DNA from: Selaginella moellendorffii
Taxonomy: Eukaryota > Plantae > Lycopodiophyta
DNA: 64,000 nucleotides
Direction: 5' to 3'
Assembly (NCBI RefSeq): GCF_000143415.4
Contig: NW_003314261.1
Coordinates: forward strand, 3,216,880 to 3,280,879
Shown: positions 1,402 through 14,200 of the stretch, one piece after another
Layout of the letters: each line of letters starts with the position of its first letter
How positions within the stretch are numbered: position 1 is the stretch's first letter
Made by a program: the position numbers and the translations under genes
Notes under the pieces: model-generated
Seen by the model: the letters and a program-made list of their open reading frames with translations, nothing else
Told to the model about the DNA's origin: nothing
Database searches by the model: none

Positions 1402-3636
<2,235 letters not shown>

Positions 3637-4171
3637 TGCGAAAAATGGAAAATTTTCGAGAACCCTAGGCACGATTCCAAGTGATTTAAACTCAAACCCG
3701 GAATCGTACAAGTGGAACAATTAGAACCGTCCGATTGCCCATCCAACGGTCCAATCGGAGACAAGGGGACCAAAAATAGCTTTACCAGTGGATAGACTTC
3801 GCGTGCGACGATGATCGCATTCTTTACACACGACATTGAAACCGATTTGATGGATCGATCAAAAAAAAAAAATTTTGTTTGCGTTTTCTTGGTTATCTCT
3901 CTGGAACAACGAAAGTTAGAAGGCGAAGAACAGCGTTGCAAGTAAAACCTGGACGCTTTGATATAATCTCTAGAGAGAACTTTTAGGAAAGCAGGGAAGT
4001 TCCAGCCCCCTTCAAAAGCAAAGTTGTGAACGATTAGACGAGCTAATACAAAGAGAAACTTTCTTACGCTAAATGTAAAAACCGGAGCTTTTCGTTGTCT
4101 CGTTTCGTCTTGTGGCATGGACGCCAAAATGAGAAGAGGATATATACAGTCTCGCCTGCCTTGCTTGCCTG

Positions 4172-7144
<2,973 letters not shown>

Positions 7145-7429
7145 GCCGGCGCGCGCCTTCCTTGATTCACAGCCCTAGCGCGCCATCGCCTACCCTAATT
7201 CCCAGAGCGCCCTCCAAGCGCCGCTCACACGTTAATGCCTCCAAATGAAAACCCTAGAACAGAGACGGCGCGGTGCTTTATTACAATCGTGGCATCTAAA
7301 CACACACCACGTGGCATAGCACACTAGGATTCAGGAATTTTCGAGAGAGTCCTCCATGGAAGAACACATTGAATCGAGGAAGAACTAGAGGATTAATCAA
7401 GAACACAAGAGCGGTCGATCGATCCATTA

Positions 7430-7990
7430 CTACCGCGCCTTGGGATCGGGAGCAGCGAACATCATCCCGGCATTGGCAGCGGCGCCGCGCGGGGGAGCGA
7501 ACCCTAGCAGCTTCTGGAGATTGGATCGGATGCTCACCGAGCAGAGGAAGTAGAAGAAGACCATGGAACAATCGGTGGGATCGTCGCCGGGCAGGCCCCT
7601 GTGCGTCATCTTCTGGATGAATGGCGACGGCGCGAATGGGAGCTTCGCCACAGGCTTGCCCTCGAAGAGCGACGAGAGGAGGCCAAACACGACGAGCAAG
7701 ACGAGCGCCACGACGGCGCCGGATTTGAACTTGAAAAAGGAGAGATCCCTGCTCGATTCCTTGAGGCTCGACTCGAATCGATCCATCTTCTTGGTGCGCG
7801 AGGATTTCTTGGCGCCTCCCCCGCCGCTCTTCATCGTCTCCAGCTTCTTGCTGGTGCGATCTATGGTGTAGCGCAGCGCCTTGTAGGAGGAGGAGCGGTA
7901 GATCAGGAGCCAGGAGATCCCCTCGCAGATACACGCGGAGGCGAAGGCGATGGCGAGGATGAGCAGCGAGTCGCCATACCCCGGATCCAT
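7430..7990 (-). CDS. TMCO1: TMCO1 (EMC3/TMCO1, DUF106) ER membrane protein, intronless
   Basis: CEGISWLLIYR, FEGKPVAKLPF, HRGLPGDDPTDCSMVFFYFLCS, NLQKLLGFAPPR. Confidence 0.93.
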   Translation of the reverse strand: MDPGYGDSLLILAIAFASACICEGISWLLIYRSSSYKALRYTIDRTSKKLETMKSGGGGAKKSSRTKKMDRFESSLKESSRDLSFFKFKSGAVVALVLLVVFGLLSSLFEGKPVAKLPFAPSPFIQKMTHRGLPGDDPTDCSMVFFYFLCSVSIRSNLQKLLGFAPPRGAAANAGMMFAAPDPKAR

Positions 7991-8160
7991 CCAAGATCCC
8001 TAAAATATTTTGCCCAAGAACCCTAGAAAGCTTTGGCAATGGCGGCGAGGCGCGGAATCGACGCGATCGCAATGTCACATTTGGATGCGGCTTGTGGATT
8101 CGTGAGGCTCATCGTTGGAATCTCCAGGATCCAGGGCTTTAGCTAGGGTTTAAGGGGAGA

Positions 8161-9939
8161 ATGATCTCGCTGCGATCGCTGCGATCCGGCGAGGCTACCG
8201 GCCCGCACTGGAAGCTCCTTGGGAGGATGATGTGCTCGTCGGCGGCTAGTCCCAGGTATCCAGCAATTTCTTCTCAGAAAAACTCCACTTCATCGTCCAA
8301 AGATCCAGCACCTGGAATAAATCAATCCAATCCAGCTCCAGCTTCATCGTCCGGGGATCCAGTAACTGGAAGAAATCAATCCATTGCAGCTCCAGCTCCA
8401 GCGCCAGCTCCCAAAGATCACACTCCATCATACTGCTTCCCGCCCGGCCAGCATCCATCCCGGCTCAAGGCCAGCCTCTACAACTACAAGTATGAGATCT
8501 TCAAGTCGCCCACCAAGACTGGGGTTTTCGGGCACAGGGTCGGCCCAGCCAGGATCCACGCTCCACACCGCATGGCTCGAAAAGCCAGGAACGCTCCACT
8601 GGCCAAGCGGGAGAGCCTGCCATGGGAGGTTCGCTCGCTCATGAGAAGCCACGAGAACTCCAAGAGAAGGAAGCCAAACATGGCGAGCAACGTTCTTCCA
8701 ATAGGTGGCGGAGCTCACGCGCCCAACCTGGCGCTCAAGCTCCTCCAGACGGTGGACGTCTCGGAGATGGTACGCTCGGTTCTCCTCGGCTCGCTGCTCG
8801 GCCACGGCAATCTCTTCGTGGACAGGGACAAGTACCCCGACGCCGCGGTGCTGTTCTTCCGGAACCACGCCATGAACAAGGAGTACTTCGACTGGAAGGC
8901 CGAGCAGTTCAAGGAGATGGCGTTCGAGCACTCTTTTGGCACCCGGGCCGACAAGCTCGAGTTCCGGACGGTCCCGGTGCCCGAGTTCCGGGACTTCCAC
9001 CACATGACTTGCTGGAAGAACCACACGGTGGTGAAGCGGAAGTGGCTCAACCACATGACGCCGGTGTCGCTGGCGGTGTGGTGGTGCGATCGCGGGAGTA
9101 TCATCGCTCGCGGGACCAAAGGCCGGATCATCCTGGACAAGTTTGACAAGCAGTCGGTGGAGATGATCCAGAAATACCTCAAAGTTATGTGGAAGGTGGA
9201 GGCGGAGGTGGTGTGCCTCCACCGGGCTGATCGGCTGTGGGGGAGGAGCCGCGTCGAGAAGTGGTACTATCGGCTCCACCTCCGCACTCCGCAGCTCAAG
9301 ATCTTCCTGCGGATCATCATGGGATACATTCCCGTGCCTGGGATGATCAAGAAGACGGTGGTGATACACGACAGCGTCTCCAAGCAGAAGGCCTGGGTGG
9401 AGGAGATGAAGGCGGCCATGCCGCAGTGGTTCGAGGAGATCGACGCGGAGGTGGCACGGCAGAAGGGCGCCCGGGAGAGCGTGAGGGAGATGGCGAGGAG
9501 GCGAGAGTGGGAGGTGATGAACAAGGCGAGCTTGGACGCTGGTGGTAAAGGATGTGAGCTCAGCGACGTTCCCTTGCGGAGGACGAGGTGGTATGCTGAT
9601 CGAAGATCACGTAGCGAGTGGAAAGGTGCGACTAAGATGGATCAAACAGGAGCTAGTGGTGAAGACGCAGCGAAAAAGACACTAAGGATGAACAGCCGGA
9701 AGCTGGGAGTGAGATCAGAAGCTCCGGAAGTCAAAGTAGGCCATGCCAAGCTGGATCAAACAGCCTCGAAAGCTAAAGTTGACAAATTCGATCAAGACAT
9801 GAAGAAACGAAGAAGTGACAAGGAGAAATTCAACCAGAAGAAGCCGCAAGGAGGAGAAGTGAAGGCGAGAGGAGTGGAGATTACCAAACTGTTCAACATT
9901 TTCACGAACAGGGATGAGAAAGCGGCTGTTGCTGCGTAA
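8161..9939 (+). CDS. Intronless protein with organelle-targeting-like N-terminus and a degenerate I-SceI-type (LAGLIDADG_2) homing-endonuclease domain
   Basis: 592-aa ORF. Motif 1 VLLGSLLGHGNL (aa 207-218) and motif 2 KWLNHMTPVSLAVWWCDRGS (about aa 294-313), followed by YYRL and FLRIIMGYIPV. Strong GC3 codon bias across the domain. Confidence 0.82.
   Translation: MISLRSLRSGEATGPHWKLLGRMMCSSAASPRYPAISSQKNSTSSSKDPAPGINQSNPAPASSSGDPVTGRNQSIAAPAPAPAPKDHTPSYCFPPGQHPSRLKASLYNYKYEIFKSPTKTGVFGHRVGPARIHAPHRMARKARNAPLAKRESLPWEVRSLMRSHENSKRRKPNMASNVLPIGGGAHAPNLALKLLQTVDVSEMVRSVLLGSLLGHGNLFVDRDKYPDAAVLFFRNHAMNKEYFDWKAEQFKEMAFEHSFGTRADKLEFRTVPVPEFRDFHHMTCWKNHTVVKRKWLNHMTPVSLAVWWCDRGSIIARGTKGRIILDKFDKQSVEMIQKYLKVMWKVEAEVVCLHRADRLWGRSRVEKWYYRLHLRTPQLKIFLRIIMGYIPVPGMIKKTVVIHDSVSKQKAWVEEMKAAMPQWFEEIDAEVARQKGARESVREMARRREWEVMNKASLDAGGKGCELSDVPLRRTRWYADRRSRSEWKGATKMDQTGASGEDAAKKTLRMNSRKLGVRSEAPEVKVGHAKLDQTASKAKVDKFDQDMKKRRSDKEKFNQKKPQGGEVKARGVEITKLFNIFTNRDEKAAVAA
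8287..8412 (+). repeat. Imperfect 54-bp in-frame tandem repeat plus (PA)n stretch in the N-terminal linker
   Basis: cttcatcgtcc...gatccag...ggaa.aaatcaatcca...cagctcca occurs twice, 54 bp apart. Confidence 0.7.
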
Positions 9940-9997: not shown

Positions 9998-12708
9998 TCA
10001 CAAGTACTGTGCTATGTCGCCTATTCCTTGCGGAGCTTCCATCCCTGCGCGCATCGCCTCTCTCTCCTCCCTGAAAACCTCGGTTATCACCACCTCCGTT
10101 GTTGTTAGCAGTGACGAGATACTGGAGAAAAAAACCCGACATAACCCAAGCTTGAAAGCTTTCTGGAAAGAAAAAAATAAAAAGAAATGTACCTTGCAGC
10201 ATCCATGAGAGCTATTCTGATGACTTTCACTGGATCTATAATCCCGGCTTTGATCATATCAACGTACTCACCTGGTTTCCATCAAAAACTCCCTTAAAAC
10301 GCGAGACCACAGGAAGAAATAGCGTCTTTTACCTGTGGCAGCATCGTAACCAAAGTTTGGACTGCTCTGCTCGAGAAGCTTGGACACCACCAGAGCGCCT
10401 TCGACGCCAGCGTTTGCAGCGATTGTGTGCGTTGGTATCTGCAGAAGAAATTAAAAAATTGATATTCGAGAGCTTGTTTTTATTTTTTAATCACGAACCT
10501 TTAGAGCGTTCTGGATGACTTGAACTCCGATCTTTTGATCAAAGCTTGGTACATTGAGGTTTTTTAGCGCGTTAGCCGCATAGAGCAATGCAACTCCACC
10601 TCCTAAACACAGTTAAGAGTATAAAATGAAAGCATCGGTGGTTGCTTACCAGGAACAATGCCTTCTTCTATCGCTGCGTTTGTTGCGTTAAGCGCATCCA
10701 TCACGCGGTCTTTCTTTTCCATGACTTCTGCTTCACTTCCGCCCCCGACCTGGCACAGCATCGGATAAATGACGCACGAATAGCAAAATGTTTCCACCTT
10801 TAACATGGCCACTCCACCGGATAGCTTTCCCAAACGCTCCTCCAGCTTTTCCCTGTCGTACTTGGAAATCGCAACAGGTATTTCTAGCCGGATCTGAGAA
10901 AATAGAACCATTAAGACCATCGTCACGAACTGTTTTCATGTATAAAACCTGCTCGCAACGCTCTTCAATGGCTGCTTTGTCGCCTCCTCCATTTAGGATA
11001 ATGGTGTCTTCTTGAGCAATTGTCACCTGAGAGATCGGTTTACCGCAAGTTCAAACCATTGGGGCAACGGACCTGTTTTGCCGTTCCGAGCAGTTCAACA
11101 CGAACATCCTCAAGCTTCAACCCCATCTCGTTTGTGATTAGCTGCCACAAATTTGGTTCGACCACCACATGACAAGCCGTGAAGTAACAGCTTACTTGTG
11201 CACCGGTCAAAATACCAATGTCCTCCAGAGTGTTTCTCCTATTTTCACCGTAGGCTGGGGATCTTATGGCAGCTACCTGAAAGCTCGACGTTTAGAAAAG
11301 AAGAGAAGAAAAAAATAACAAACAAACAGAAGAAGATTCTCATACCTTGAGTCCACCCCGCATTTTATTCACGACTAAAGATGCCAAAGCCTCGCCTTCC
11401 ACATCTTCAGCAATAATAAGTAGAGGCCTTTGAAGCTGAAGAAGCAGTCATTTTGAGACCAGGCAAAGAAAGACGGATCCAAATGAACTAGAACTACCTT
11501 CTTGATGATCTCAAGCACAGGTGCAAGTTTCTGTGCGCTTGAAATTTTGTCAGGATGGAGGAGAATCAATGCGTCTTCAAACTCCTGCAAAAGCTCGGCA
11601 AATCAAGCAGGTGCCAGCCAGCAAGACTCGCATACCGCTTTTTGCGTCTTTGCATTGGTGACAAAGTATGGCGATATATATCCCTTGTCTATCTCCATCC
11701 CCTCGACAACAGTAAGCTCGTTATGGAGTTTTTGACCATCCTGCGAAATGAAATGTTAAAGCCAGAGAAAACCATGTAGGAAGCTGTTCTAGTACCCAGA
11801 TAGTGATCAATCCCTCCTTGCCAACTCTTTCCATAGCTTTAGCAACCAGATCGCCAATTTCCTTGTCACCATTTGCCGAAACAGTCGCGACCTGCGCAAG
11901 AATTACGAACACAAGCCAAAAGGAAGCACAGCACAAACCTGTGAAATCTCCTCGGAAGTACTGATCATCTTAGCCCGATTTTTAAGATGAAATACAACGT
12001 GATCGACTGCTAGATTAATACCACGACGGAGTTCCATTGCGTTCATGCCAGCAGCCACCAATTTGCAGCCCTCGGTGAAGATTGCACGCGTTAAAACCGT
12101 GGCAAGGGTCGTCCCTGCAACTCCATCACTGTGAAGCGAATGAAAAAAGAAAAACATCGATCGAAAGCTTACCATCTCCAGCAGCATCGTTAGTTGATAT
12201 TGCCACGCGCTTGACAAGGTCTGCTCCAACGTTTTTCATCTTATCCTTGAAACCAATGGCCTTGGCAACCGTGACACCGTCTTTGGTAACTCTGGGAGGT
12301 CCATACTTATCTTGCTCGATGATCACATTTCTTCCCTAGAAATTTCAAGCATCAGATGAAAGAACGATGACAATCCTACACTCTAGATTTTATTTTATTT
12401 TTCTACCTTTGGACCCATTGTCACTTTGACACAATCTGCGAGCTGCTGGACTCCTTGAAGCATAAGTAATCTCGCCTCCACACCATACTTGGTGTTCTTG
12501 GGGATAAGTCCATAGTGTCTCGCAAGGAACTACGATGAAACAACAAAAAATCTAAGATAGCTAAAAGAAAAAATGAGGGAAACAAACCTACCTGTGCTTG
12601 TGTCTTGGATCTTAGCAACCCAGCAGCGAGAGAATTTCGTTAGCTCTCAGCGGGAACGAAATCTCCAGTTGCTTACCTGGAAATCAAGGCGCCGGCTACC
12701 TTGTACAT
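9998..12708 (-). CDS. HSP60: Mitochondrial chaperonin 60 (divergent paralogue), multi-exon
   Basis: [11 protein letters not shown] start; [42 protein letters not shown]; ends ...GIGDIAQYL*. Confidence 0.93.
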
Positions 12709-12939
12709 GTTAAACCCTAAACCCTGAGAATTCGGGGACGCAGCGCCACGCACTCCCACTGCTCCGCTACATTCCTGTCGATTGCCGAAGAGAAGACGAG
12801 ATCATCCCCGCGCAGCGCAATCCATCGACGATGGCCACGACGACAACGAAGACAGATATATTCCCTTGGAATCAAATAACTCATAGCATATTCTTTGAAA
12901 GTAAGAGAATATACTTTTCCGTTAGGTAGTTTAATTAAG

Positions 12940-14200
12940 TTACGAAGCTGCAAGAGTCAAGTCTTGGGGATACATGGGCCACAATAGCATTCGCAAGAGT
13001 ATCAATCAATCCAGGGCCACTGTCAAAGGAGGACTTCCTTGTGCCTCCATCCGCAAATCTCCGGCCCATGGATCAAGTTTACTGGACGAGGAAGTCCAGG
13101 GCAAGCTCGCTTTCCAGATCCGAAAGGAAGCAACTCCTTGTGCCTCCATCCGCAAATCTCCACCCCATGGATCAAGTTTACTGGACGTGGAAGTCCAGGG
13201 CAAGCTCGCTTTCCAGATCCGAAAGGAAGCAACTCAAATTCGTGGTAGACTGATATTGCTATCAACAAACTTCCCAGACTTGAACATTTCCGGATCTGGC
13301 CAGGCCTGGGAAACCCTTCCTGTTGATGAGCATTGTCGCCTTTGCTGGAATCTCAAAGCCTGCAACTAGTCGAGGCTCCGGGGACGTGTGTGGGATCAGC
13401 AGCGCTAGCGGAAATGTCTCCTTGATTACAGCTTCCCAAGTCGGACTCCTCCACCATTCACCGCGCTTTCAATCTCTTGCATCCATTCAGGACTAGGCCA
13501 TAGCCCATTCAATCACGGTCAAACAATGTCTGCGAGCCACCACTAAGTAAATCCTAGGCGAGCAAAGAGAGACTTAGCTCGATTAATAGAGAGTTTTCAC
13601 TTGGCAGACTCTGGGTCTGGTCGGGGCCGTTGACTCGCACCTTTGTCATTTCCACAAAGTCTGGAATTTCTCCAGATCTTTGCTCATCCATAACATTGTC
13701 CAGGAACGCATCCATCTTCCAGTAGGCTATGCTCCATCTAGGGAAATAATTTGCTATGGAGAACACCGCGACTGCCTCTTAGCATCTCCACAAAATACCG
13801 TGCCTCTGGATCATCACCAGAAGTCTTGGATCCAAATTCCAAAGTCTTGTTCATGAGGATGTGGGTCATAACATTGAAGCCCAGTGATCTCAACTTCCCT
13901 TGCAATGCCACTGGTTGATGCACCTTAGAAGCCTTGGCGTGCTTGGCAGTGAGCTCCCACAGCTCGTCCCAGATGATTGGGTTTGGTGAAGGATGGCCGT
14001 GAAGAGCTCCATGGAGCACATCCTTCGAATGTTCTTGTACTCACCTTCCAAGTAAGATAAGCTCTTGAAGTTGTACATGGCGATCTCAACGGCCACTCTG
14101 GGTCTGCTAGCTAGTGAATGCGGCATCGTGGGTCTTGAGGAACAGCTACCATGAGTGGAATGGATCCCAGGAGCAAGTACATGAGGGATCCAAACTTCTG
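12940..14200 (-). pseudogene. Cytochrome P450 (CYP71 clan) pseudogene 1
   Basis: Collinear with the P450 at 22785-24333 but with many small deletions/frameshifts and no 5' end; heme-motif segment duplicated. Confidence 0.9.
13037..13235. repeat. 99-bp tandem duplication inside P450 pseudogene 1
   Basis: ELLPFGSGKRACPGLPRPVNLIHG appears twice in ORF 13023-13268; copies are nearly identical. Confidence 0.92.

Follow-up and report, generated by a model that had tools for sequence, protein, structure and literature searches.

A 64,000-nucleotide stretch of the genome of the lycophyte Selaginella moellendorffii (contig NW_003314261.1, positions 3,216,880 to 3,280,879 of the forward strand; here called the window) carries at its positions 8161–9939, on the + strand, an intact, intronless open reading frame (ORF) of 592 amino acids with an ATG start, seen both in the ORF list and in the sequence, that encodes a LAGLIDADG protein. 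We conclude that this nuclear gene very probably descends from the homing-endonuclease ORF of a group I intron inserted after E. coli U793 in the mitochondrial small subunit (SSU) ribosomal RNA gene, rrnS. The simplest history would be a single move of that ORF into the nucleus of an early land plant, with later decay of the organellar copy. We further suggest, with some preference over other explanations, that the relocated protein is imported into mitochondria, is nuclease-dead in Selaginella, and works there as an RNA-binding splicing factor. The descent is much more secure than this maturase reading.

The gene was divided as follows, positions being those of the window.

8161..9939, + strand: complete coding sequence of the nuclear LAGLIDADG protein, 592 codons plus stop, without introns (ORF list, RNA contigs and allelic ORF)
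8161..8712, + strand: N-terminal extension, residues 1–184, absent from mitochondrial intron ORFs
8713..9480, + strand: LAGLIDADG_2 two-lobed core with a family-specific C-terminal helical extension, residues 185–440 (Pfam, AlphaFold2, Foldseek)
8788..8808, + strand: first LAGLIDADG motif, GSLLGHG, with His215 (8803–8805) at the position of I-SceI D44 (family-profile alignment)
9070..9096, + strand: second LAGLIDADG motif, LAVWWCDRG, with Arg311 (9091–9093) at the position of I-SceI D145 (family-profile alignment)
9481..9936, + strand: Selaginella-specific Lys/Arg/Glu-rich C-terminal tail, residues 441–592, net charge +15, with no counterpart in the moss orthologues

Pfam assigns residues 205–351 to LAGLIDADG_2 (PF03161) with an E-value of 3.6e-25 (89.3 bits, the cut-off being 25), and finds neither pentatricopeptide repeats (PPR) nor any other family in the 592-residue protein up to E = 1. 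When the single protein was searched against the Protein Data Bank (PDB) no match was found; I-SceI and I-WcaI were found only by a family profile, built from 66 members, which matched I-WcaI at E 1e-21 and I-SceI at E about 1e-17. The AlphaFold2 model of residues 185–440 has alternating helix and strand elements (pLDDT 94.6, pTM 0.92), and its best solved matches in Foldseek are I-WcaI and I-SceI, with TM scores of 0.62–0.64 by query and 0.70–0.73 by target. The bacterial protein WhiA is also among the structural matches, and a protein-atlas look-up returned generic LAGLIDADG_2 clusters only.

In the profile alignment, the consensus GslLGDg lies over GLILGDA of I-SceI and wWlDDGs over YWFMDDGG, so that His215 (codon CAC) and Arg311 (codon CGC) fill both catalytic-acid columns, which are Asp in 89% and 91% of 57 intact endonuclease-type relatives. 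Metal binding requires each LAGLIDADG helix to end in an acidic residue, Asp or Glu, and the Selaginella protein has His215 and Arg311 there instead, with the hydrophobic core and both helices retained. By descent and fold the protein is a LAGLIDADG_2 member, but from its sequence endonuclease activity is not expected. The N-terminal 184 residues open with a basic, Ser/Arg-rich, presequence-like segment (MISLRSLRS...GRMMCSS in the ORF translation; 6 R+K, 1 D+E and 9 S+T in the first 40 residues), followed by a Pro/Ser/Ala-rich low-complexity stretch and a basic linker, and carry a net charge of +20. An earlier note on this DNA, made from the letters alone, had described the protein in much these terms, as a LAGLIDADG protein without PPR repeats, with an added Arg/Ser-rich N-terminus and with His215 and Arg311 in place of the catalytic acids; the Pfam match, the I-SceI-like model, the profile alignment and the lack of the extension in mitochondrial intron ORFs all support that description.

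When 1.84 billion representatives were searched exhaustively with a profile, 1965 hits were obtained. Next after the moss, Sphagnum and Selaginella proteins come proteins of about 290–320 residues with intact GTLLGDG and WWCDDG motifs, from Closterium sp. NIES-68 and other algal ORFs. These closest relatives are ORFs in SSU rRNA U793 group I introns, with 35–48% identity over about 250 residues (35–36% when compared with the Selaginella domain, and as much as 48% with the nuclear protein of Sphagnum). In every case examined the ORF is housed in an intron that interrupts a bacterial-type SSU rRNA gene, mitochondrial or otherwise, with GGATTAGAT on one side and ACCCTGGTAGTCC on the other. The Closterium contig is organellar, with tRNAs, large subunit (LSU) rRNA and a weak sdh4 match, and its ORF lies inside the SSU rRNA gene, in an intron of 1117 nt between ...AAACAGGATTAGAT and ACCCTGGTAGTCC; a related metagenomic ORF has the identical insertion site. 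The intron follows position 783 of the Rfam bacterial SSU model, which we take to be E. coli U793 by the standard 785F primer numbering; written as RNA, the junction flanks are ...GGAUUAGAU before the intron and ACCCUGGUAGUCC after it. The Sphagnum and Closterium introns have core elements in common, (A/G)AUCC...GGUGUCC at the 5' end and GAGAAUGAUAUAGUCC at the 3' end. A scan of metagenomes for the exon–intron junction pattern yielded about 12 real U793 introns among 120 loci, the rest being mostly chance 17-mer matches, and every recovered U793 intron of sufficient length encodes a homologue of the window protein, P0011 likewise.

The same intron was found in moss mitochondrial DNA with its ORF in ruins. 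Two contigs of 141,455 and 41,418 bp carry tatC, nad4L and an intron-split sdh3, adjacent to rrnS, rrn5 and group II introns, and their TatC is 94% identical to that of a Sphagnum magellanicum nuclear mitochondrial-DNA copy, 84% to that of Andreaea and 76% to that of Marchantia; the tatC, nad4L and sdh3 content and the TatC identities identify them as Sphagnum-type mitochondrial DNA, as does a size of 141–143 kb given for such contigs. In this DNA rrnS is interrupted once only, by 1173 nt inserted at the U793 site, and the ORF inside the insert is broken up among three reading frames and contains several stops. In a second moss-type mitochondrial contig (L059) the intron is 935 nt long and its ORF remnant is still more eroded. 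Because C-to-U editing cannot repair frameshifts or stop codons, these moss mitochondrial ORFs are pseudogenes. A careful maximum-likelihood analysis groups the seven nuclear proteins in a single clade (100/99); the two mitochondrial remnants from mosses are placed as its sister (89/61), and the algal mitochondrial ORFs come next. The motif WISEMK.A.P is common to the nuclear proteins and the moss mitochondrial remnants; it is absent from the algal ORFs, that of Closterium having WISEQCSALP. The transfer is old and shared with mosses, and is not a lycophyte event.

Two other origins were considered and rejected. Bacterial horizontal transfer does not fit the nearest relatives, which are streptophyte mitochondrial, nor the derived motifs that the moss mitochondrial remnants share with the nuclear proteins. 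The earlier note had left the source as organellar or microbial; the organellar half of that proposal is what the U793-intron ORFs uphold, and the microbial half is given up. A nuclear mitochondrial-DNA (NUMT) pseudogene, the other candidate, is at odds with the intact ORF, the spliceosomal intron in moss orthologues, the expression, the low dN/dS and the 42% identity to the mitochondrial remnant.

Several observations concern the rRNA genes that house these introns. In two Sphagnum-type contigs (L117 and L093) the 3' exon right after the rrnS intron reads ACCCCGGTAGTCC, where all other examined taxa have ACCCTGG; the genome here has C at a position of the 790–800 region of SSU rRNA that is universally conserved as U, which suggests that a moss mitochondrial rRNA undergoes C-to-U editing immediately beside the splice site. 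In an algal mitochondrial rrnS intron (L004, 2160–3130), a region of about 1 kb lying downstream of the ORF is taken up by many copies, in both orientations, of a short palindromic element (…GAAAAGAGGTGGCTG…CAGCCACCTCTTTTC…), which looks like a hairpin repeat proliferating inside the intron. The first rRNA piece of the Closterium mitochondrial rrnS (L001, 7046–13630) ends near model position 546, and there is a separate Rfam group I intron match at 12339–13192, indicating several introns besides the U793 one. Finally, on one algal mitochondrial contig (L003) a LAGLIDADG_1-type ORF at 3286–3795 lies just after the LSU rRNA match, so that the rRNA cluster of one organelle hosts ORFs of two LAGLIDADG families.

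The nuclear relatives come from mosses. A word-indexed search found three moss proteins, that of Ceratodon purpureus included, with 39–40% identity, and the Sphagnum nuclear protein, of 423 residues, is encoded on chromosomes of 31–34 Mb. In Ceratodon the gene is split after codon 141 by a GT..AG intron of 687 nt, and another moss lineage has a spliceosomal intron at the same position. Every nuclear orthologue has an N-terminal extension of at least 100 residues, and the mitochondrial ORFs have none. Selection was measured among three Bryopsida-type mosses, as the earlier note had proposed for orthologues, and is strongly purifying in the domain (dN/dS 0.09–0.18, compared with 0.4–0.6 in the N-terminal region). 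No seed-plant member of the family was found in the exhaustive profile search. The two motifs of the nuclear proteins are as follows.

Sphagnum: motif 1 GSLLGDG, motif 2 WWCDEG
One moss lineage (P0007 type): motif 1 GSLLGDG, motif 2 WWCDSG
Ceratodon type: motif 1 GSLLGDS, motif 2 WWCDAG
Selaginella: motif 1 GSLLGHG, motif 2 WWCDRG

To judge from these sequences, the cutting residues were lost stepwise, from D/E in Sphagnum through D/S or D/A in other mosses to H/R in Selaginella. Among endonuclease-type relatives 43 columns are conserved in 75% or more of the sequences; 37 of them are retained in Sphagnum and 34 in Ceratodon. The count for Selaginella is 28 of 42: the losses cluster in the NAR..RHS segment that follows the first helix, and the core positions are intact. 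The Selaginella branch is 1.3–1.8 substitutions per site long, four to five times the Sphagnum branch. The presence of both acids in the Sphagnum protein (GSLLGDG and WWCDEG) allows a broader account, in which the family does more than act as a maturase and which we consider quite unlikely: the Sphagnum protein would be imported into mitochondria as a working homing endonuclease, and by cleaving rrnS copies without the intron it would ensure that the intron is kept. In derived mosses that have lost the intron, and in Selaginella, the same scaffold would have taken on a new and essential role. There it might recognise the 790-loop region of mitochondrial SSU rRNA while ribosomes are being assembled, or help the parts of the split cox1 intron cox1i1305g1T to come together.

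The Selaginella gene is expressed and is open on both haplotypes. The LAGLIDADG stretch is present in more than 20 RNA-labelled runs from at least nine studies. In four of these runs (four studies) contigs are colinear with the window from about 7333–7653 to 10121 with no joint inside the ORF, and in the same contigs nine introns of 46–71 nt (CT..AC on the + strand) are removed from the adjacent Cpn60 gene, from which it follows that the LAGLIDADG gene is transcribed and intronless. The second haplotype has a 595-residue ORF, again with EMC3/TMCO1 upstream and Cpn60 downstream and with His215 and Arg311 unchanged. Over the whole ORF the haplotypes differ by 11 synonymous and 12 non-synonymous codons and two in-frame indels, with no damage to the frame. 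These differences comprise three synonymous and two non-synonymous in the domain, two synonymous and five non-synonymous in the N-terminal region, and six synonymous and five non-synonymous, with one in-frame codon indel that is also seen in RNA, in the C-terminal tail, whose 152 residues are an open frame in both haplotypes. One RNA run has an in-frame +GCT after 9799 and T>C at 9431 (Phe424Ser), the two markers of the second haplotype (L126), which shows that both alleles are expressed in public material.

These data bear on whether the Selaginella gene is a relic in decay, functionless and under relaxed selection even though its frame is open and it is transcribed. The long branch, the loss of 14 of the 42 conserved endonuclease positions and the excess of non-synonymous changes in the N-terminal region are what such a relic would display. 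We nevertheless consider it very unlikely: both ORFs are intact, with in-frame indels only, the domain does not share the excess, the core and both LAGLIDADG helices are kept in a very confidently predicted model, and RNA is found in many libraries, from at least nine studies. An ORF of 1.8 kb, moreover, would close under neutrality over the divergence observed.

The locus is that of a free-standing nuclear gene in both haplotypes, and has no intron, intein or mobile context; the earlier note had placed the ORF among housekeeping genes, and its neighbours bear this out.

7430..7990, − strand: EMC3/TMCO1 family neighbour, divergent, about 170 bp upstream of the start codon (ORF; Pfam EMC3_TMCO1 on the allelic copy)
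10121..11437, − strand: Cpn60-family neighbour, convergent, with many introns of 46–71 nt (four RNA runs show CT..AC joints; the allelic copy matches Pfam Cpn60_TCP1)

The Cpn60 and LAGLIDADG genes adjoin at their 3' ends. Public annotation of the locus consists only of a partial 248/253-residue 'hypothetical protein', the allelic gene model being EFJ31993.1 ('SELMODRAFT_4540, partial'). The RNA contigs cross without a break the roughly 170 bp (7990–8160) that separate the divergent EMC3/TMCO1 and LAGLIDADG start codons, a gap that may be a shared bidirectional promoter with overlapping transcripts. Adjoining the EMC3/TMCO1 gene, an ORF of 273 residues at 6323–7144 on the − strand has an extreme content of Arg, Ser, Asp, Glu and Lys (RS/RD repeats, HKHRKHKH) and looks like a gene for an SR-like or RNA-processing protein.

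With regard to function, we propose the following course of events. A copy of the intron ORF would have entered the nucleus of an early land-plant ancestor, where it gained its N-terminal extension, and the mitochondrial copy would then have decayed. The Selaginella protein would be made in the cytosol and imported into mitochondria, as suggested by the composition of its N-terminus and by the extensions common to all nuclear copies. With a fold predicted to be monomeric and I-SceI-like, it would have lost DNA cleavage through the replacement of both metal-binding acids by His215 and Arg311, given the established two-metal mechanism of LAGLIDADG enzymes. It would bind the RNA of the ancestral rrnS intron, and possibly also cox1i1305g1T, aiding folding and splicing, and would thereby be needed for maturation of mitochondrial 18S rRNA. 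Three things lead us to propose binding of the rrnS intron: the ancestry of the protein, the presence in the same plant of a cognate intron lacking an ORF, and the LAGLIDADG maturases already known as a precedent.

Candidate clients are present in the mitochondria of Selaginella. The mitochondrial DNA of S. moellendorffii has the group I introns cox1i1305g1T and the ORF-less rrnSi839g1, all of them spliced correctly, and the last nucleotide of the 5' exon of the rrnS intron is a U produced by C-to-U editing (PMC5654404). The rrnS intron occurs likewise in Isoetes, where it is only 237 bp long and has no ORF (PMC2731911), and Huperzia has no group I intron (PMC3325193). Among mosses, the rrnS intron is reported for Sphagnum palustre, Atrichum, Tetraphis and Buxbaumia and for no other lineage (PMC13662536, citing Liu et al. 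2014). We infer that rrnSi839g1 (rrn18i839g1) is the intron at U793, since the sole rrnS intron of the Sphagnum-type contigs is at that site. If so, mitochondrial rrnSi839g1 would be a more natural client than the trans-spliced cox1 intron that the earlier note had put forward; as sole client the latter becomes less likely because the ancestry points to the rrnS intron, and it stays in consideration as a possible second client only.

A number of points weigh against this proposal. The sister relation of the nuclear clade to the moss mitochondrial remnants, obtained in a phylogeny against organellar intron ORFs such as the earlier note had called for, is moderately supported (89/61) on a weak backbone, and approximately unbiased (AU) tests are compatible with alternatives and so indecisive. 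The RNA contigs are unstranded and fused with neighbouring genes. In the Sphagnum-type contigs some 727 nt separate the start of the rRNA model from the U793 site, and the Marchantia-based number 839 is not reproduced. Targeting, RNA binding and the splicing role are all deduced, the first of them from composition. The long Selaginella branch and the loss of 14 of 42 conserved positions, the NAR..RHS strand included, could reflect a new function in place of a retained maturase role, and given this accelerated evolution the protein could have a role outside the rrnS intron in Selaginella too. Finally, Ceratodon-type mosses, which are reported to be without the rrnS intron, keep the gene under the purifying selection described above, which implies a further role there; this role may concern other group I introns of the mitochondria, the rRNA or DNA. 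It is because these mosses keep the protein without the intron, and Selaginella could be like them, that we hold the maturase reading with only a slight preference.

The moss evidence also lends itself to a rival explanation, in which the protein is a sequence-specific DNA- or RNA-binding factor unconnected with splicing. Such a factor might, for example, bind mitochondrial DNA, or else the 790-loop region of the mitochondrial SSU rRNA or of the gene that encodes it, and act in ribosome biogenesis, in transcription or in the control of recombination. Strong purifying selection in mosses reported to be without the intron is in keeping with this explanation, and WhiA, a transcription factor derived from a LAGLIDADG protein in bacteria and a structural match of the modelled domain, offers a parallel. 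The basic C-terminal tail added in Selaginella and the unusually recombinogenic mitochondrial DNA of this plant (PMC5654404) also agree with it. However, three other mitochondrial group I introns, cobi420g1, cox1i624g1 and nad5i753g1, are reported for the mosses without the rrnS intron (PMC13662536), so that clients for a splicing factor would still be on offer there. Much of the first beta-hairpin region conserved in endonucleases is replaced in Selaginella, which argues against ancestral DNA-site recognition, and any DNA or rRNA target is purely hypothetical. On balance we regard a binding role apart from splicing as unlikely, though it deserves to be kept in view.

Comparison with known systems helps to place the splicing factor that we favour. 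With the ORFs of U793 introns (for example the uncharacterised Closterium sp. NIES-68 GJP46270.1) the Selaginella protein has in common the LAGLIDADG_2 subfamily and a C-terminal helical extension with LQ..W.SE. Those ORFs are organelle intron-encoded, about 250–320 residues long, without a presequence and with intact GxLLGDG and WWxDDG, whereas the Selaginella gene is nuclear, has additions of 184 residues at the N-terminus and 152 at the C-terminus, and has His and Arg for the acids. I-SceI and I-WcaI (PDB 1R7M, 5A0M, 6X1J), endonucleases of yeast mitochondrial LSU rRNA introns, have the same monomeric two-lobed LAGLIDADG_2 fold but are only 16–18% identical, are active enzymes with Asp at both motif ends, and belong to an intron of LSU, not SSU, rRNA.

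The precedent for RNA binding comes from fungi. In yeast bI2, bI3 and bI4 and in Aspergillus I-AniI the LAGLIDADG fold binds or folds the cognate group I intron RNA, and bI2 matches the Selaginella model with a TM score of 0.63; yeast bI3 likewise lacks the catalytic acids. Fungal maturases are encoded in their own intron and translated in the organelle, whereas the Selaginella protein is nuclear and would act in trans after import.

In plants, the protein most like it in outline is OTP51 (At2g15820; rice Q6ZHJ5), which is also nuclear, organelle-directed, nuclease-dead and of the same fold class (TM 0.61–0.64). OTP51 differs in its roughly ten PPR repeats, its plastid targeting, its group II intron client (ycf3 intron 2) and its presence in seed plants. 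The identity of the Selaginella domain to the rice and Arabidopsis OTP51 domains is 18–19%, the same level as to inteins and I-ChuI (AlphaFold DB Swiss-Prot), and there are no PPR proteins among the best 150 of the 1965 profile hits. Mosses, moreover, carry separate OTP51 orthologues (PMC9459714). The Selaginella protein is, on its sequence, not an OTP51 orthologue and is of a different lineage and origin; the earlier note had likewise kept it apart from OTP51, and orthology to this or any characterised factor was not found. OTP51 nonetheless suggests that the protein could be a plastid-targeted splicing helper, whether for ycf3 intron 2 or for the plastid trnL group I intron, for it exemplifies the use of a nuclease-dead LAGLIDADG domain in plant plastids (PMC9459714, PMC8393795), and Ser-rich N-termini are typical of transit peptides too. 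The mitochondrial ancestry, the distance from OTP51 just described, the separate moss orthologues and the lack of the family in seed plants by the exhaustive search, though plastid introns are present there, make a plastid role highly improbable.

In its evolutionary route the proposed mitochondrial factor most resembles the nMAT family. For nMAT1–4 (PMC8393795), too, an organellar intron ORF moved to the nucleus, gained a presequence, lost its mobility activity and came to act in trans on ORF-less introns, but these proteins are of an unrelated family (reverse-transcriptase/X domain) and have group II introns as clients. A search of the literature, incomplete in its coverage, gave no account of a nuclear non-PPR plant LAGLIDADG protein or of a relocated group I intron ORF.

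Plant mitochondria have many introns without helper proteins of their own, and the helpers known to have been relocated to the nucleus, the nMATs, serve group II introns. If our proposal is true, the family described here would be the missing group I counterpart of the relocated nMATs, with its history visible as a series that runs from an intact ORF in algal mitochondria, through a decayed remnant in Sphagnum mitochondria, to intact nuclear copies that pass from D/E to D/S and D/A and then to H/R. It poses a puzzle in the retention of the gene by mosses without the rrnS intron, and it would provide both a natural series for the change from a DNA endonuclease to an RNA-binding factor and a concrete candidate for the splicing of tiny ORF-less introns such as the 237-bp rrnSi839g1 of Isoetes.

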